This document shows positions 48,050 through 61,351 of a stretch of 64,000 nt of DNA, piece by piece. The notes below the pieces were generated by a model that did not search any database, had not been told where the DNA came from, and saw only the letters and a program-made list of their open reading frames with translations. The stretch's first letter is position 1; each line of letters starts with the position of its first letter. Source of the stretch: Salpingoeca rosetta. Lineage: Eukaryota > Protista > Choanoflagellata. The stretch lies in assembly GCA_033442325.1 (NCBI GenBank), contig JAWQFM010000031.1, positions 655,497 to 719,496 of the forward strand. Reading direction: 5' to 3'. The translations under genes were made by a program, and so were the position numbers.

Positions 48050-48608
48050 ATGGCGAACAACAACAACGACAACAACAACGAGCAATATGCCTTTTACATC
48101 TCAATGAGTCGCGCAAAAGAAGATGAGCATGATGCGCTGACGCTGAAGACCAAGGCGACGACGCTGAAGACCACACTAGAAAGTTCACCGCGCGTGTTGT
48201 CCGTGTTCCTGCCTACTCAAGCTCAAACAGAAGAATCGGCGAGAGAAGCCCTGCAACAGTGCAGTACGGTCATTGTGTTGGCGACAAGCAAGTATGGAAA
48301 GGAGTCAACCAATGGACAGGAGAAGCCAGCTACTGGATGGACCTCGCGGGGCGAGCTGGAGTTCTTGAAGCAGAACATGCACAAGCCACGTGTGCTCGTG
48401 AAGGTGCACGATGATCAGTGGCTTCCAGCCAATGTTCGCGAGCTTGCTGGAGGAACAAATGAGGTGCGGTGGAAAGTGACAACGGGAGATGCTGACGCCG
48501 TGCGTGCCCACCTGTCCAAGGTCGTAAACTTCATTCTCAATCCCCATGAAAATCAGCAGCAGGTGAGGTTGTGTGTGCATGCAAGTGTGCGTGTGCGTGT
48601 GCGTGTGC

Positions 48609-48660
<52 letters not shown>

Positions 48661-51600
48661 GACTGCTTGTCTTGTGTGAGACGAGCGAGTGACCTGTGAG
48701 CCTTGTGAGCGCGTGGTGTCGTTGTCATTGTTGTGCGCTTGTTGCTTCGTTGTCATCATCTCATCGCCGCAATCTGGCGCCTACGCCTCGTTTGATTTGA
48801 CAAACGTCAGCCTGCCGAGGCGTATGGAGTGCAACCAATGCAGCTCCCCCAGCAACCACAACAGCCAGAGCAACCACAGCCACATCAACACAAGCAGCTG
48901 AAGCAACAACAACCAAAGCAACCGCAGCCGCAGCCGCAGCCGCAGACACAGCAGCCGAAGCAGCAGCCGAAGCAACTACAACCAAAGCAACCGCAACCGC
49001 AGCCGCAGCCGCAGCCGCAGACACAACAGCACAAGCAGCCCAAAAAACAGCAACAGCAGCAACAGCCGCCACAGCCACAACCGAAGCAGCAGCCGAAGAA
49101 ACAACCGAAGCAGCCGCAGCAGCAACCACAGCCGCCACCACACAAACAATCACAGCAACCACAGAAGCCACAACCACATCCGAAGCAGCCACCACACAAA
49201 CAATCACAGCAGCAACAGCCGCCACAGCCACATCCGAAGCAGCCACCACACAAAAAATCACAGCAACAACAGCCGCCACAGCAACAACAGCCGCCACAAC
49301 CACATCCGAAGCAACTGCAGCAACACGAGCAGCCACACAAACAATCACAGCAACCACAGAAGCCACAGCCACAACCGACGCAGCAGCCGAAGAAACAACC
49401 AAAGCAGCCGCAGAAGCCGCAGCCACTACACCAACTGAAGCAGCCACCACACAAACAATCACAGCAACCACAGAAGCCACAGCCACAACCGACGCAGCAG
49501 CCGAAGAAACAACCAAAGCAGCCGCAGAAGCCGCAGCCACACAAACAATCACAGCAACCACAGAAGCCACAGCCACAACCGACGCAGCAGCCGAAGAAAC
49601 AACCAAAGCAGCCTCAGCAGCCCCAGCAAAAGCCAAAGCAGCTACACCACAACAAGCAGTCGCAGCAACAACAAGGACACATGAAGCCAACACCATCTGC
49701 AAGCGTCCAACTTGCTTGTGTTGGTGCCTTCGTTGGCCTGCTGCTCCTTGTGGTCTCCTTGTGGTACTTGCTCGCGGCACCCGGTCACCTGGAGAACTTT
49801 GATTGCCGAAACGCAACCAACGTTGCGTACTTTCTCGAGCGTGGGCTCACGGAGGCAGGCGACGTGCTGGACTGCAACTGTATAACGTTCAGTCAGCTCA
49901 AACGCGTGCACGGGGACGTCACCATTGTAGCTGGCGTGACAGCCGTCAACTTTGGCTCAATCACTGCAGTCGGTGGCGCCATCACTGGCTGGGACGCAAG
50001 GGCGCTGGAACAGGTTGACTTTGGCGACCTGCGCGTGGTGGGCGAGCACGTCCAACTCCGCACGGATGCGCTCACGCAATTTCGCCTCGAAAACATCGAG
50101 AGGATTGGCGGAACCCTGGATCTGAGACGCAACCCCCTCGTCTCCATCGACTTTGGCGCCCTTTCCACGGTGGGCGGGTCGCTTCGTCTGGGGCGAACAG
50201 CTTTGGACACCATCGACCTGAGCAACGTCACGTACATTGGCGGGTCACTGCACTTGGACCACAACCCGCGATTAACGCGAGCGTACTTCGGGAAGCTGGC
50301 CAAGTTTCACCATGACGTGGATCTGTCGCGCACCAACATCACCAGCATTAGCTTCGCCGGTGCAGCAGGCCATGGGCCGCATCATCTTACACCACTGCCC
50401 TGCCCTCACCCACATCGACATGGGAAACATATCGCTGATTGGGCACGACCTGCTGCTTGCTGACACCGCCGTCACATCGGTCCACCTCCAAAAGGTTCAG
50501 CGAGTCGGGGGCTCCATCAACATGGAGAACAACCCGCGTCTCAGGTACATTGACTTTGGCAACTTGGCATACATCCACGAGCGGCTCGACATCAGCAACA
50601 CCAGCGTGCGCAAGTTCCGCTTCGACGACGTCAGCTTCGTTGGGGGGCACATGCACTTTGCAAACAACCCGCACCTCGTCACCGTCCACTTTGGGAACCG
50701 CCTCACATCTTACAAGGGCTGCCTGTGCATTGATAGCCCTGCCCTCAGGTGGGTGAACTTTGGCGCCATCACCACCGTCAAAGGCGACATTGACATTGCT
50801 TCCTCGGATCTTCTTCTGGAAGTCAACTTCCGTGGCGTCAGGAGCGTAGCAGGCCACGTCATCCTCACGGGCGAGGTCTTTCGAGTTGACTTTGGTCACA
50901 TCACTCACATCGGCGGCCACGCACGGCTGCGCAGCCCACGACTGAATACAGTTGTTGGCTGGGACCTTGCCACGATCAACGGAGACCTGCAGCTGGTGGC
51001 GGCTGCCATTTCGCAACTGGAGCTGCCGCAGTTGTCCCACGTGGCGGGCGGGTTGTATCTGGCACACAACGGCCTGACCAGAGTACAGTTCCCACAGTTG
51101 TCACGGGTAGGCGGTCACATTCGCCTGGGGAACAACAGCTTAACGCATGTTCACTTTGGTGGCTTGGCACACGTTAGCGGGCACCTTGATCTCTCCAGCA
51201 ACAAGATGGTGCGGATCAGCTTCGGCAACATTGCACATGTCGGTGGCACCCTCAACATCTCCCACAACCCGTTGCAGGTCGTGAACACCGGCCACCTTCA
51301 GCACGTGAGCAGGGACGTTCTGGTGACCTCTGAAACGTTGGTTGCGCTGGAGCTGAGTCAGCTCACGCACGTGGGTGGTTCGCTCACGGTGGTGGCGGAG
51401 AACCTGGTCACCATGAACTTTGGCGCGTTGACGAGCGTCAACCACAGCCTCATCATCGCCGTGCACAAGCTGCCCCATCTCAGTTTTGGTACCATCCGCA
51501 CTGTTGGGCGAGACCTCTTCATCGTTGGGCACAAGTGGGCGCGTGGCGGGTTTGCGTTGCACTTCCTGAGCATGCTCTACTTTGACTTTGGCGGCGACCA

Positions 51601-51787
51601 TTTGTCCAGCGTGGACGTGGGCAGCATCGAGCATGTTGGTGGCGACATTGTGGTGGGCGCCAACGGGCTCACCACCATCGATGCAGCCTCCATCAAGCAC
51701 GTGGCTGGCAGCGTTCGTGTCCTTTCAACTCCCTGGATGAATTACGTCATGACCCGTGTTGGATCCGCCTTTGGGCTCGGGCCCTAG
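48050..51787 (+). CDS. TIR-like domain - Q/P/K-rich linker - TM - LRR/receptor-L-domain repeat protein (type II receptor); frameshift at about 50359
   Basis: Exon 1, 48050-48562 (GCCACCATGG context, 171 codons, CAG|GTGAG), encodes YAFYISMS..SVFL..AREALQQCSTVIVLATSKYG..WTSRGELEF..KPRVLVKV (TIR_2-like pattern). Phase-0 acceptor at 48811. TM LACVGAFVGLLLLVVSLWYLLA at about 49711-49776. Many 22-23-aa LxxIDFGxLxxVGGxLxLxxN repeats continue across two frames. Confidence 0.72.
48838..49680 (+). repeat. Gln/Pro/Lys-rich coding minisatellite with near-identical units (HKQSQQPQKPQPQPTQQPKKQPKQP x3)
   Basis: Nucleotide unit ccacacaaacaatcacagcaaccacagaagccacagccacaaccgacgcagcagccgaagaaacaaccaaagcagcc recurs three times between about 49330 and 49615. 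Confidence 0.9.
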
Positions 51788-52296
51788 CTAAGCTCTGCGG
51801 GAATGGCGGGAATCTTGTCTGGGAATGGCCAAGTTGTTCTTGCAAACAAAGAACAAGACAGCTACACATGTGTAGAATAAGAGAATAAAAAGAGCGACGT
51901 CATCTGTGATGTGTTGGGTGTGCACGCGTGCAAGTAGGGCTATGCGTTTTCGCGGTTCGGTGTGTGAGTTAATAAGTATGGGGTTGTGTGTGCGTGCTGG
52001 TGCGTTGCTGCGTGCGCCATTCGCTATTGGCAGTTCGTGTATGAAGGGGCCACGAACGAAACGTCCACATAGTCTGCGGGCTGTTCAGTAAAACAACACC
52101 CTTGTGCAATCTCACATGATTTGAATGAACACGACGCATGGGTGGGAGGCAGAAAGCAACGGTACACGAAAAGAGAACATGATCGTGAGAAGAGGGGAGG
52201 TGGGAAAGCAAAGAAGAAGGAAGTGGCCCTACATGGCTGATTCACGAAATTGGCAAGAAAACAACACAAACACGAAAACAACAGTGGCAGGAAGTA

Positions 52297-54836
52297 CTAA
52301 GGAGTCAACGCGGGCAGCTCGTCAGCCTGCTGTTTGGTTGCACAAAGGAAGCGCAGAACCAGGTTGCGTCGTGCGGAAGAGGATTGATACACAAGCTGCG
52401 CCGACAAAAACCGAAGCAAGAGGTTGTTTATCGTCGGGACATCTTGGCTTGGTGATGTTGCGTGAGACTGCTGTTGCCCGAGTTGCATTTCAAGCAACAT
52501 CCATTGTGCACTTGTGGTAACTCGGTGGTGTGGCCCAAGAGTGGACCGCAAAATTGGAAGTGCCTTGCTTAGGAAGTGACGGGCGCTGTCGTACTCTCCA
52601 GTTTTGAAATATGCACTGCCGAGGTTGTGGAATACACTTGCCGTGTCTGGGTGATTGTCACCGTGCGTGTCCGGTAGTATCTGCAGGCGCTTGTTGAAAT
52701 ACTTGATCGCACTGACGTATTCACCAGTCTTCATGTATGCCTGGCCTAAAATGAGTAAGGTCTTGTCCGTGAGTGGGTGCGCACCCAACTTGAGCTCGTA
52801 GATATTGAGAGCCTCCTTGCAGCTCTTGATTGCACGGACATAGTCGCCTGTCTTGAAATAAACGTCTCCCAGGCACCCATATGTGCCTGCGATATCAGCG
52901 TCACTATCGCCCGGTGCGTCCAAAAAAGCCTCGAGCGCCTGAGTGAGGTGTTGGATCGCTTGATCATACTCTTTGTGGCTGGCGTACGCGGCTCCCAAGC
53001 GACCCTGTGACGCTGCTATTGCTTGTGAACTCTCGCCAGGCATTCGCTTACTCAGTAGCCATGCATTGCGAAAGGCGACAATTGCCAAGTCATGCCTGCC
53101 ACTTTCGTCATACACGTCGCCCAATTCGTGGTACGCAGCAGCCGTGGCTGGGTGCTCCTCGCCCAGTGCTTTCACCCTAACCGCCTGTGCCTTCTGAAAG
53201 TACATTGCTGCGCGGTCGATCTGGCCTCTGCTCTTGTACACGTCGCCCAATTCGTGGTACGCAGCAGCCGTGTCTGGGTGCTCCTCGCCCAGTGCTTTCA
53301 CCCTAACCGCCTGTGCCTTCTGAAAGTACATTGCTGCGCGGTCGATCTGGCCTCTGCTCTTGTACACCTCGCCCAAGCTGTGGTATGTCTTTGCTTTCGA
53401 CAAATTATCCTCTTTCAGCTTGGTTTCTATCTTTGCGGCTTTGTGCAGCTGCTTGAGTGCGTTCTCGTCATCCCCTATTTTGAAATACACGAGGCCCAGG
53501 TTGTGGTACGTGCATGCAGTGTCGGGGTGGTCTGGCCCAAGCTTCTTGATGCGAACCTCGAGCGCCTTCTTGTAATGCTTGATCGCTCGATCGTGTTCCC
53601 CTTTGTTGTCGTACAGGTGGCCCAGGTTGTGTTCCGTTGCTGCGGTGTCCGCGTGGTCGTCACTCAGCTTGTCGGCTTTGATATTCAGGCTCTTCTTGAA
53701 GTATTTTTCGGCTTGGACGTAGTTGCCTCTGCTGTTGTACATTTGTCCCAGATTGTTGTACGTGCTTGCTGTGTCTGGGTGGTTCTCACCGAGCTCCCTC
53801 ACCCGAATTGACAGAGCTTTCTGATAGTAGCTGTCCGCGGTATCACAGTCTCCCTTGTCGTGATGTGCCAGGCCCAGGCTGTGGTATGTTGTGGCGGTGT
53901 CTGTGTGCTCCTCGCCAAGGGTGCGGCGCTGGATTTCAAAGGCCGTCTCAAAGTTCTTGATCGCCTCGTCGTACTTGCTTTGATGGTACCACGCTTTACC
54001 GAGGCCGTGGTAGGTGTTTGCTGTGGATGGATGGTCGTGACCAAAAGTGCTCTCCTTAATCTTCAGAACTTCCTGAAGGAGTTCGATTGCGCGATCATAC
54101 TTGCCCTTGTTGACATACGCGCGCGCCAAAGTGTTGTTGACTTGTGCTGTGTTGGGATGAGTGTCTCCGACGGTGTCACGACAATAGGCCAGGCAGCTGT
54201 TGAAGAAGTCCTCTGCTGCGTCATGCTCTCCAAAGTACGCCATGACCAGGCCGACGTGGTTGCACAACGTTGCAAACTGGTGTGTGTTGTTATCCCCAAC
54301 CTGCTCAGCCTCCTCCACGAATGACCTTGCCATGGCAAGGCACCATTCTCGCAGCTGCCCTTTCACAGCCTTGTTCAAGCGTAGGAAGCCAACGCCGTCC
54401 CTAATCGCCTTGAAGATCATCTCCTTGTCCTCTTCCTTGAATGCGCTGGCCTTCTCTGCTTGCACCGCCACCAGCATGTTCGTGATTGCCCTGTGGTCTT
54501 CAAGCACAGCTTCCCTCAGCTTCATGCGCTGGTGCTGCGGCAGCCTGATCTCCAATTCAACGTGGCTTTCCTGGCTGATGGCGCAGAAGATCTCCCACAG
54601 GCACCACGCGCGTGTCAGTGCGATGGGGTTGTTCCATGGCGTCAACACCAGCAGCACATTGCCAATGGATGCAATGGCACTCTTGAAGGTCGTGCTCCAC
54701 CTTGTCATGTGCATGAAGGGGGGGATCAAGCGTGCGAGAGTGAATAAGCATGTTCGTTTGTTTGTGTGCTGTATGTATGCATGTGTGTGTATGCATGTGT
54801 GTGGATGCATGCGCGCGCGTGTGTGTGTTCGTGAGA

Positions 54837-54915
<79 letters not shown>

Positions 54916-55547
54916 TGTGTGTGTGTGTGTGTGTGTGGTGATGTGAACTTGGGTTTTCTTGCCATCGCAAGTGTCAGAATGCCAGAATGCGCGCGGCTGA
55001 AATCAAACAAAACCCTTCGTCAGCGTGCTGCTGTGACACCATTTCGCTGTTGTGCTGGTATGCCACACCACACACTTAGCAACCAGGGCAGTCACCCCTT
55101 GTCGCTGACTCACCAGTCGTCAGGAAGCGTGGCTTTCACATCCTCGTGCTGGTTGATCGAGAGAATGTCTAACCAGAAGAACGTCGCTTCCTTGGTTCTG
55201 TCTTCATCCGTGTGCTTCTCCTTCGCCTCCTCGGCGTACTCCAGCATGGCGGTGAGGACGTCAAAAATCTTGTACTGCCACGCGTGCGACACGAACACCG
55301 TGGCTGGTCCCACCTCCTCAGGTTTTTTTTTGCGCAGCCGGTCGACGTAGGAGCACTTCCATTCCTTTGTGAGGTGGAGCACAAGCTTGTTGCACGCCTG
55401 ACGTGTGGTGAGCTCCTCATAGTTGTTGGGATAATAATCCTTCAGCAGTGCCATGAGCCGCTTGATCCCTTCGACCGACACCCCGGCCATGCACATGGCG
55501 GCGCCTGCCATTGTTGGTGCGCTTGCAGTTGGCTTTGGATCGGACAT
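52297..55547 (-). CDS. HET/TIR-like N-terminal domain + array of 42-aa kinesin-light-chain-type TPR repeats (2 exons: 55547-55114, 54700-52297)
   Basis: ATVFVSHAW, FFWLDILSINQH, W|WSTTFKSAI, PWNNPIALTRAWCLWEI. Then repeats of LGEEHPDTAxxYxNLGxxYxxxGxYxxA. Confidence 0.88.
53111..53362 (-). repeat. Near-perfect 126-nt tandem duplication of one TPR unit
   Basis: 53111-53236 and 53237-53362 are identical except one base (HPAT vs HPDT). Confidence 0.92.
54835..54936 (+). repeat. (GA)n-(GT)n compound microsatellite in the TPR gene intron
   Basis: Directly visible. Confidence 0.95.
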
Positions 55548-59550: not shown

Positions 59551-60451
59551 ACACACACAGCTTGGAGAGCACGTCTGTAGCCGGTGAGTTCTCGTCATCC
59601 GACGTCGCGCATCTCTTCGCGTCGCTGCAGATGGCAGACTTCAGCTACATGCGCTTTGAATCCGTGGTGAGTTCGCGTGTGTGTGTATGTGTGTGTGTAT
59701 GTATGTGTGCGTGTGCGTGCGTGTGCGTGTGTTCTGTGGTGGAGCTTGTTCATTGAACGTGCCGCACTGCCGTCAACCTTGCACACACACACTCACACAC
59801 ATACACACATACGCCTCTTCTTCAGCGTCTTGCTGAGTTTGCGGCTGCGGCGACGCAGCTGCGGTATCTTGACTTGGACGAGAACATGGTGGATGAGGCC
59901 ACGGCCATTGCCTTCGCATCCGGCTGCCCAAACCTCACATTCGTCTCCCTGGTCAGAGCATGCGATGTTGCAAAACAAGGAATGTGTGTGTATGTGCGTG
60001 TGTGTATGTGCGTGTGCACGTGCACCGTAGCTTTTATATGATGCTTGACACATAACTTCACCACAAACACAATCCTCCACGTTCCCCCCACATGCCACAC
60101 AATAACCAAACACCGCCCACCCCCCTCTTTTGCTTGTTGGACAGGATGGGCAGGGTCAGGGCGACGCGCTGGTGGCGGCCCTGGCCAACAACTGCCCGCA
60201 CGTGCGCTATCTTTGCATCCGGTTCTGTGATGAAATGACGGACAACGCATTCAAGTCCCTGCAGCAGTTGCGCAATTTGGAGTGGCTGTGCATGAAGAAG
60301 GCGTTTGATGTGTCACCGCAAGCCGTCATGGACTTTTTTTCCAGCGGCGCCGCGCAGCACTTGACACGCATTGATCTCACCGAATGCAACAACCTCTCAA
60401 ATGAAGGTGGGAAAGACTGTGTGTGTGTGTGCGTTTGCGCGTGCGCGTGCG

Positions 60452-60527
<76 letters not shown>

Positions 60528-61351
60528 CGCGTGTGTGTGTGTGCGTGCGTTTGCGCGCGCGCTCACGCGCGTGTGTGCGNNNNNNNNNNNNNNNNNNNNN
60601 NNNNNNNNNNNNNNNNNNNNNNNNNNNNNNNNNNNNNNNNNNNNNNNNNNNNNNNNNNNNNNNNNNNNNNNNNNNNNNNNNNNNNNNNNNNNNNNNNNNN
60701 NNNNNNNNNNNNNNNNNNNNNNNNNNNNNNNNNNNNNNNNNNNNNNNNNNNNNNNNNNNNNNNNNNNNNNNNNNNNNNNNNNNNNNNNNNNNNNNNNNNN
60801 NNNNNNNNNNNNNNNNNNNNNNNNNNNNNNNNNNNNNNNNNNNNNNNNNNNNNNNNNNNNNNNNNNNNNNNNNNNNNNNNNNNNNNNNNNNNNNNNNNNN
60901 NNNNNNNNNNNNNNNNNNNNNNNNNNNNNNNNNNNNNNNNNNNNNNNNNNNNNNNNNNNNNNNNNNNNNNNNNNNNNNNNNNNNNNNNNNNNNNNNNNNN
61001 NNNNNNNNNNNNNNNNNNNNNNNNNNNNNNNNNNNNNNNNNNNNNNNNNNNNNNNNNNNNNNNNNNNNNNNNNNNNNNNNNNNNNNNNNNNNNNNNNNNN
61101 NNNNNNNNNNNNNNNNNNNNNNNNNNNNNNNNNNNNNNNNNNNNNNNNNNNNNNNNNNNNNNNNNNNNNNNNNNNNNNNNGAGTCGTGACGCGTCTCATC
61201 GCGAAGACACCTGCACACTCACGGTGGTGGTGATGTGGAGAGGGGGGTGCTGTGGTGTGGCAGTGGTGGTGGCAGCAAGGAGAGCGAAGGCACAATGTGA
61301 CGGGACAGCTGTCGATGGCACACTCACACACAAAAAAAAAAGGAGAAAAAC

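Follow-up and report, generated by a model that had tools for sequence, protein, structure and literature searches.

Chance proximity of two large gene families probably explains a tail-to-tail pair of TIR-like and TIR/HET-like repeat genes in Salpingoeca rosetta

Results

Two convergent genes near a contig end

The window analysed here is a stretch of 64,000 nucleotides from the choanoflagellate Salpingoeca rosetta (positions 655497-719496 of contig C31, which measures 796,024 bp). Within it, at a locus some 85-92 kb from the contig end, lie two genes that we call A (48050-51787, forward strand) and B (55547-52297, reverse strand). Gene A joins a TIR-like domain to a predicted membrane helix and a series of leucine-rich-type repeats, while gene B joins a TIR/HET-like domain to an array of TPR units. 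The original prediction, made from this sequence, had taken the two for a candidate innate-immunity island in which a membrane sensor and a cytosolic sensor would form a two-part recognition module. Taking together how the genes are laid out, the folds and homology of their domains, the sizes of the two families and the positional statistics, we arrive at a different view: A and B are probably independent genes, drawn from two large, dispersed and fast-evolving S. rosetta families, that have come to be neighbours by chance.

The arrangement itself was correctly predicted. The two genes are convergent, with stop codons at 51787 and 52297, separated by the following element:

51788-52296, no strand: intergenic spacer, tail to tail, 509 nt between the two stops.

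Repeat instability in both genes was likewise foreseen correctly, in that Tandem Repeats Finder (TRF) detects recent tandem duplications in the linker of gene A and in the TPR array of gene B.

Gene A carries a divergent TIR-superfamily domain

We assign the following features to gene A, with the source of each assignment in brackets (AF2, AlphaFold2; ORF, open reading frame):

48050-48562, forward strand: exon 1, predicted N-terminal TIR domain, 171 amino acids (AF2, Foldseek, VIA, hhalign).
48563-48810, forward strand: predicted intron, GT..AG (direct sequence reading, TRF).
48811-49704, forward strand: exon 2, part 1, Q/P/K low-complexity linker of 298 residues (composition, TRF).
49705-49779, forward strand: single predicted transmembrane helix (hydropathy).
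49780-50358, forward strand: first part of the putative ectodomain, repeats of ~24 residues of L-domain/BspA-LRR type (translation, in the frame of ORF 48829-50463).
50355-50366, forward strand: frame change in exon 2 (ORF reading, stop counts).
50360-51787, forward strand: second part of the putative ectodomain, ~475 amino acids of repeats, and stop (weak Pfam matches, stop-free frame).

Scanned against Pfam, exon 1 matches neither TIR nor TIR_2, and the only family to register, DUF4062, does so at 17.5 bits, under the cut-off of 24.7. A phmmer search of exon 1 against 1.8 billion representative proteins returned zero matches, its own product included, and the exon is apparently missing from public protein sets. 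When we aligned an eight-member profile of related genomic sequences (the A-type subfamily, see below) with S. rosetta TIR_2 exons using hhalign, the two matched with a probability of 96% (E = 2e-9). In this alignment Glu102 of gene A lines up with the Glu that TIR domains conserve in their 'C..E' motif, that is, with the catalytic position in helix alpha-C; within the A-type alignment the column is Glu in seven of eight rows and Asp in the other. A four-sequence profile searched against PDB sequences retrieved the TIR domain of SIGIRR (E = 0.0026).

Structure comparison points the same way. The AF2 model of exon 1 (mean predicted local distance difference test score, pLDDT, 77.6) adopts a five-strand parallel beta/alpha flavodoxin-like fold, whose top Foldseek matches are SARM1, IL-1RAcPb, a Bacillus cereus TIR, SEFIR and ThsB (E between 4e-5 and 1e-3). 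In VIA-align, residues 11-167 superpose on DNPH1, IL-1RAcPb, RPV1, RPS4 and RUN1 with Z of 12-12.7 and on SARM1 with Z of ~11.5, the alignments covering 120-134 residues at a root-mean-square deviation of 2.5-3.4. Because DNPH1 and MilB score as high as TIRs do, the match should be read as one at superfamily level. With that proviso, sequence profiles and the predicted model together confirm exon 1 as encoding a genuine, divergent TIR-superfamily domain, and the prediction of a TIR-like domain on a first exon of its own is borne out by profile, fold and Glu102 alike.

Gene A belongs to a larger subfamily. Three weak paralogues led us to a subfamily characterised by the signature ..KYG..T.SKFST.EEL..I...KPFFLVKMC, and searching the genome with the eight-member profile yields 38 A-type loci. 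Only 4 of the 38 pass the Pfam TIR_2 cut-off, so that most members will be missed by domain-based surveys. Paralogue L004, which encodes a TIR domain, a membrane helix and LRR_5/L-domain repeats, has the N-terminal TIR, type II layout in common with gene A, and in both L004 and L005 the TIR exon likewise stops just past the domain. The latter locus (L005:4983-7920; C31:607568-610505, forward strand) is an N-terminal TIR type II membrane gene with an ectodomain unlike that of gene A, composed of a coiled coil, TNFR_c6 cysteine-rich repeats (E = 8e-14) and a DUF6923/tachylectin-like propeller; for its TIR exon, Pfam TIR_2 gives a match (E = 8.6e-4) that takes in 114 of 122 positions. Other members appear to be cytosolic. 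L006 (L006:4857-8720; C17:622265-626128, forward strand) is a single frame of 1287 codons that combines an A-type TIR-like domain with a poly(A)-binding-protein-like region, where stretches resembling RRMs and some five copies of an MLLE/PABC-like segment can be made out by eye. A TIR-PDZ-like gene on C17 and a C29 gene whose TIR is joined to an unrecognised partner region also appear to fall into this cytosolic group. A-type loci show no preference for contig ends (4 of 38 lie within 100 kb of one, against 4.9 expected).

A reversed Toll-like layout and a frame change

Exon 1 of gene A opens with an ATG at 48050 and runs for 171 codons to a phase 0 end at 48562, immediately before a GTGAGG donor. 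The intron that follows contains a (GT)n microsatellite (48585-48661, TRF) and closes with an AG at 48809-48810 (alternatively at 48842-48843) that restores the frame of the long ORF. The first part of exon 2 encodes a linker in which 83% of residues are Q, P or K (Q 121, P 82 and K 43 of 298) and which consists of recent tandem units according to TRF, one of 114 nt present in 1.8 copies at 100% identity and others of 90 nt at 96%. Next comes the only strongly hydrophobic segment of the protein, its most hydrophobic 19-mer averaging 2.51 on the Kyte-Doolittle scale, whereas the N-terminus holds neither a signal peptide nor any hydrophobic stretch. Sequence upstream of the helix is Lys-rich; the pieces downstream contain 8 N-glycosylation sequons and 9 Cys. 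From these features we infer a type II topology, with TIR domain and linker inside the cell and the repeats outside.

The putative ectodomain totals ~670 residues of ~24-residue L-domain/BspA-type repeats. Against Pfam these repeats give weak, sub-threshold matches (LRR_8, 2.6e-4; Recep_L_domain, 8.3e-4), while those of paralogue L004 exceed the cut-offs (LRR_5, 1.4e-14; Recep_L_domain, 1.6e-11). A word-indexed library search with the second ectodomain piece found 9 distant relatives only, at 24-33% identity and with PF01030 carriers, and no S. rosetta protein. Gene A presents itself as a candidate receptor with a Toll-like layout in reversed order.

The expectation that gene A would have a single intron and one long repeat exon holds as far as a TIR exon followed by repeats is concerned, but exon 2 is not one frame. 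Near 50355-50366 the ORF at 48829-50463 gives way to another at 50312-51787, and the repeat pattern runs on in the new frame; the upstream frame meets a stop at 50461-50463, 35 codons past the change. We considered a tiny intron at this point and rejected it, the only available GT..AG spanning 6 nt and the repeats continuing on both sides.

Could gene A be a recently inactivated pseudogene, in which case this strain could not use the pair as a two-part module? The frame shift with its downstream stop would fit such a reading, as would the lack of any gene A-matching protein in two large protein libraries. Yet the two halves of exon 2 are stop-free over 500 and 491 codons, with 2-18 stops in the alternative frames (none against 2-9 in the other two frames for the first part, no internal stop against 10-18 for the second), and the frame change must therefore be very recent or else an assembly error. 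Runs of N in the scaffold nearby are a reminder of the latter, and even the truncated product would still comprise a TIR domain, a membrane helix and ~200 residues of repeats. On balance inactivation strikes us as possible but doubtful.

Gene B joins a TIR/HET-like domain directly to a TPR array

For gene B we assign the following features:

55114-55547, reverse strand: exon 1, N-terminal helical subdomain and first half of a TIR/HET-like domain, with ATVFVSHAW and FFWLDILSINQ (genome matches, paralogue model).
54701-55113, reverse strand: intron of 413 nt, GT..AG, phase 2, with (GA)n/(CA)n microsatellites (TRF, paralogue comparison).
54262-54700, reverse strand: exon 2, N-terminal part, second half of the domain including LTRAWCLWE with a family-invariant Glu (family alignment).
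52297-54261, reverse strand: exon 2, C-terminal part, ~11 KLC/NPHP3-type TPR_12 units and a tail motif (Pfam, signatures).
53111-53376, reverse strand: tandem duplication of one 42-residue TPR unit (TRF: 126 nt in 2.1 copies, 98% identity).

Gene B exons were searched and aligned one by one. Exon 1 has 62 matches in the genome, which define 62 B-type loci; 22 of these lie within 100 kb of a contig end, where 8 would be expected. The donor (G|GTGAGT) follows two bases of a Trp codon whose third base opens exon 2 (54700-52297), so that the intron splits the N-terminal domain, as it does at the same position in all nine paralogues read across the junction. None of the nine is intronless. Their introns at this site are usually filled with (TG)n and sometimes free of stops.

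TPR repeats in a long second exon, as had been predicted, are amply supported: Pfam recognises TPR_12 in 11 stretches (E = 2.4e-136) as well as TPR_NPHP3 (E = 3.9e-65), and the region contains ten LGxxHPxT signatures. The family ends in a twice-repeated tail motif, NLLLRFxSA...ARRNLxLRFL, seen at 52297-52450 of the window (reverse strand) and in L001-L003; some B paralogues add a PH-like domain after it, gene B does not. The N-terminal domain joins the TPR array directly, with neither NACHT nor NB-ARC in between. There is no Walker A motif (G....GK[ST]) in gene B, and the only Pfam families it matches are of TPR type; lacking a Walker A motif, gene B would have no NTPase.

At ~265 residues, the N-terminal domain comprises a core preceded by an additional helical subdomain and followed by a long helical extension. 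Residues invariant across the family alignment run F, H, A ... R, W, C, L, W, E, the last being the Glu of WCLWE. Gene B retains 34 of the 35 family-conserved residues, and the 35th is the Trp whose codon the intron splits. By eye, its FVSHAW, FFWLDILSINQ and TRAWCLWE motifs may resemble the three conserved HET blocks.

For a structural model we turned to paralogue L049, reading across its intron, which contains no stop, with the support of a 38-row alignment. The model is confident (pLDDT > 90) outside the 63-residue loop that the intron encodes, where pLDDT falls below 50. Its elements follow the order beta-A (FVSHAW), alpha-A, beta-B (FFWFD), loop, alpha-B, beta-C, alpha-C (RAWCLWE), beta-D and alpha-D, with extra helices at both ends. 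Foldseek matches all have E >= 0.1, although plant TIRs turn up repeatedly among the highest-ranked. An exhaustive VIA comparison of residues 70-312 yields alpha/beta matches with Z of 4.9-6.1, within the tool's background range; these matches are exclusively nucleoside deoxyribosyltransferase (NDT), TIR-type chains (IL-1RAcPb, SARM1, RPP1, TIR-1, MyD88, SpbK, ThsB, TRAM and TIRAP) or an unnamed protein. Aligned by hhalign to the TIR_2 exons, the domain reaches P = 0.003 with a probability of only 10%, the three motif blocks and the Glu being in register.

Searches for named families gave nothing further. Pfam HET and TIR fail to match exon 1, the N-terminal part of exon 2 or the read-through paralogue at E <= 10. 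A whole-genome search with Pfam HET was also blank but so was its control, making this a weak result. A protein search with the N-terminal part of exon 2 identified 45 relatives, none identical to the window product; their precomputed Pfam lists include neither PF06985 (HET) nor TIR in any case, and their public labels say "TPR repeat protein" only. A phmmer search of the domain against PDB sequences returned nothing, and named clusters of the ESM Atlas offered no usable match, the nearest clusters being unnamed and found in haptophytes, chlorophytes and oomycetes. We read the domain as a separate, unnamed branch of the TIR/HET superfamily that lies outside Pfam HET. The HET/TIR-like domain of the original prediction, split mid-domain, hence survives in part: a TIR/HET-like domain with family-conserved motifs is indeed split by the intron, but Pfam HET and TIR go unmatched.

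One relative deserves separate mention. P0034, a protein of 657 residues labelled as coming from the acoel Symsagittifera roscoffensis, has the same N-terminal domain and TPRs, with 43% identity across the stretch that matches; it may represent a genuine animal member of the family, or else come from the worm's algal symbiont.

Proximity of the two families across the genome

How often the two kinds of gene lie close together was evaluated by permutation against the 62 B-type loci, using a uniform null and a null that preserves each locus's distance from its contig end. Note that p values from this analysis are uncorrected over several thresholds and gene sets and that counts include the discovery locus unless we state that it was removed. 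For gene A and its three weak paralogues (4 loci), one locus lies within 10 kb of a B-type locus when 0.08-0.13 are expected (p between 0.08 and 0.12). With the discovery locus removed, A-type loci within 10 kb number 2, against 0.80 expected (p = 0.19). Extending the analysis to all TIR-superfamily loci, 4 of 85 fall within this distance, with an expectation of 1.9-2.2 (p = 0.12-0.17), and under a Poisson distribution with these means the chance of finding at least one such pair genome-wide is ~0.85-0.89.

The closest paralogues of either gene are unpartnered: those of gene B (on C25 and C4, at 63-66% identity, and on C16) and that of gene A (on C35) have no partner within ~95 kb or more. In two of the three other close pairs, on C17 and C29, genes intervene and the partners share a strand; the B-type exon-1 match on C17 is partial only. 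In both neighbourhoods (L077, C17:71000-80999; L056, C29:14000-23999) a near-identical Thr/Asn-rich membrane-protein gene sits beside the B-type copy, which suggests segmental duplication between chromosome-end regions. Comparing profiles of the A and B N-terminal domains, we find no specific relation between them (E = 0.22).

Some observations sit less comfortably with chance. With the discovery locus included, 3 of 38 A-type loci have a B-type locus less than 10 kb away, where 0.82 would be expected (p ~0.05), and at a threshold of 30 kb all 85 TIR-superfamily loci yield 10 against 5.3-6.1 (p = 0.04-0.08). In addition, a B-type gene on C23 lies tail to tail with, and 3 kb from, another TIR gene, the sole other direct convergent TPR/TIR pair that we saw. 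This second locus (L055:3051-8080; C23:1191050-1196079) pairs the B-type gene with one in which we recognise, by eye, a Roc-COR-like part and a C-terminal TIR; the upstream exon-1 match of the B-type gene (~L055:2656-3039) has an internal TAA.

Overall, the co-localisation check that had been proposed for the prediction leaves the adjacency not clearly beyond chance, which is in essence the outcome that had been said to count against it. Since both families are large and scattered, a close pair is to be expected by chance, and with close pairs near expectation and the closest paralogues unpartnered, neither the immunity island nor the two-part recognition module is supported.

Flanking genes

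Nor is the locus the distinctively intron-poor block it had been thought to be: several flanking genes in the window are also long single reading frames, among them a PL8 lyase (1149 amino acids), a RhoGEF, an SH2 gene and one frame of 1370 amino acids. Pfam scans of 20 long window frames identified PL8 lyase, SH2, RhoGEF-PH, carboxylesterase-like, RNA12 and GCKR-like products but no TIR, TPR or other immune-type family, 12 frames having no match at all. An F-box/LRR-like frame (~60130-60420, read by eye) abuts the first of the runs of N at ~60600-61100 and ~62200, which account for a dip in GC content at 60-62 kb. The large protein libraries that we searched contain no product identical to that of gene A or gene B, though many paralogues are present, and the public S. 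rosetta annotation may lack both genes or model them differently.

Discussion

Weighing the explanations for adjacency

If A and B were a functional sensor pair held together by joint work, gene A might, for example, make an NAD-derived signal, or it might recruit B through heterotypic TIR contacts. Direct tail-to-tail neighbourhood, 509 nt apart, speaks for this, as do a catalytic-position Glu kept in both N-terminal domains, the mild excess of close A-B pairs and the second convergent pair on C23. However, the excess falls short of significance when the discovery locus is set aside or all TIR loci are counted, the pair has never been duplicated as a unit though both families expanded, and other close pairs differ in having intervening genes, a shared strand and different TIR architectures. 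Add to this that the N-terminal domains lack a specific profile relation and that gene A is frame-broken as assembled, and joint function at this locus appears very unlikely. We are equally sceptical of the more general proposal that some S. rosetta TIR receptors are kept beside NTPase-less TIR/HET-TPR sensors as working pairs, here and on C23, a scenario that we would give only a slim chance; in it, a membrane or GTPase-gated TIR would make a signal that the adjoining TIR/HET-TPR protein reads or amplifies.

A different possibility is that the genes cluster loosely by region and are not functionally coupled. TIR- and TPR-type sensor families might both build up in recombination-prone regions at chromosome ends and there be brought close to one another, by birth-and-death evolution and segmental duplication, more often than by uniform chance. 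The end bias of B-type loci is in keeping with this, the locus studied here is itself ~85 kb from a contig end, and the duplicated membrane-protein gene is common to the C17 and C29 neighbourhoods. Moreover, the excess at < 30 kb shrinks under the end-preserving null (p from 0.04 to 0.08, and from 0.01 to 0.03 in another set). But a small excess persists under that null, and A-type loci are not enriched near ends, so that we consider clustering an unlikely, if not negligible, explanation. Chance adjacency, which we favour, may itself have been helped by both kinds of gene gathering in birth-and-death regions near chromosome ends.

How the two proteins might work

Any enzymatic activity of genes A and B, and any immune role, is inferred here. 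Gene A would place an N-terminal TIR in the cytosol, connected by a disordered Q/P/K linker and a single membrane helix to an extracellular L-domain/LRR solenoid. A ligand outside might then cluster the TIR domains inside, which could signal by TIR-TIR contact or by NAD+ cleavage. As assembled, this copy would be truncated, or the assembly wrong. Gene B would encode a cytosolic protein in which the TPRs might bind a ligand, or keep guard over a target, and release or oligomerise the N-terminal domain.

Relation to known systems

Gene A recalls Toll-like receptors, and also the TLR-like and 'Kinase TLR' proteins that Richter et al. (2018, PMC6040629) reported from choanoflagellates and for which they describe no other order than LRR, membrane helix and TIR: in each case a leucine-rich-type solenoid would lie outside, a TIR inside and one membrane helix in between. 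Unlike Toll-like receptors, gene A has the order TIR, linker, membrane helix, repeats and no signal peptide, its repeats are of the L-domain/BspA (LRR_5) type, its linker extends over 298 residues and its TIR falls under Pfam cut-offs. Our literature search found nothing relevant on reversed-order TIR receptors or on S. rosetta subtelomeric TPR families. At the level of the domain, gene A resembles the enzymatic TIR/DNPH1/MilB N-glycosidase superfamily, which includes SARM1, the TIRs of plant TNLs and ThsB, over the whole domain (Z 11-12.7) and in the catalytic-position Glu. Gene B may resemble the same superfamily at its core (Z 5-6, in the background range) and in an invariant Glu within a WC-x-x-E-type motif, but differs from enzymatic TIRs in its length of ~265 residues, its extra helical parts and the lack of a Pfam TIR match.

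Dyrka et al. (2014, PMC4986451) report that homologues of HET exist beyond the fungi, among them an S. rosetta sequence, and connect HET with TIR, the two being aligned in a figure. As in the fungal HET NLR-like proteins treated there, gene B has an N-terminal domain ahead of a hypervariable array with a recent unit duplication, and its Atlas range (haptophytes, chlorophytes and oomycetes) resembles the non-fungal HET range given there. By contrast with fungal HET-NACHT-WD/TPR/ANK proteins, gene B goes unmatched by Pfam HET and has no NACHT or NB-ARC; compared with NLR/STAND receptors more widely, it has no central P-loop NTPase. The TeTIR proteins TEP1, NWD1/2, TTC41 and NPHP3 carry a NACHT ATPase (bioRxiv 10.64898/2026.09.21.753143); gene B shares with them TPRs that match Pfam TPR_NPHP3 but not the ATPase, and no TEP1 TeTIR chain was among the PDB matches listed for the B-type domain.

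As a pair, A and B are reminiscent of plant NLR pairs and bacterial defence islands in that two sensor-like genes are immediate neighbours. They differ from head-to-head plant NLR pairs in being convergent, with no shared promoter, and from clustered immune genes in that the arrangement is unconserved among paralogues and the co-localisation statistically marginal.

Implications

The adjacency of genes A and B should not serve as evidence for a module. If the pairing were nonetheless functional, it would mean that immune sensors which cooperate are clustered in the genomes of the single-celled organisms closest to animals, an early counterpart among eukaryotes to plant NLR pairs and the defence islands of bacteria. 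The locus would then also be a tractable one at which to study how TIR signalling was wired before the MyD88 and NF-kB pathways. The families themselves matter irrespective of the pair. The 38-locus A-type subfamily lies mostly below the reach of Pfam and is overlooked by surveys that rely on domain matches, and the 62-locus B-type family, with its invariant Glu, an intron that keeps its position and a tendency to lie near chromosome ends, has relatives that carry no public label beyond that of TPR proteins. Both would be well worth NADase assays and knockouts, however this particular locus turns out.

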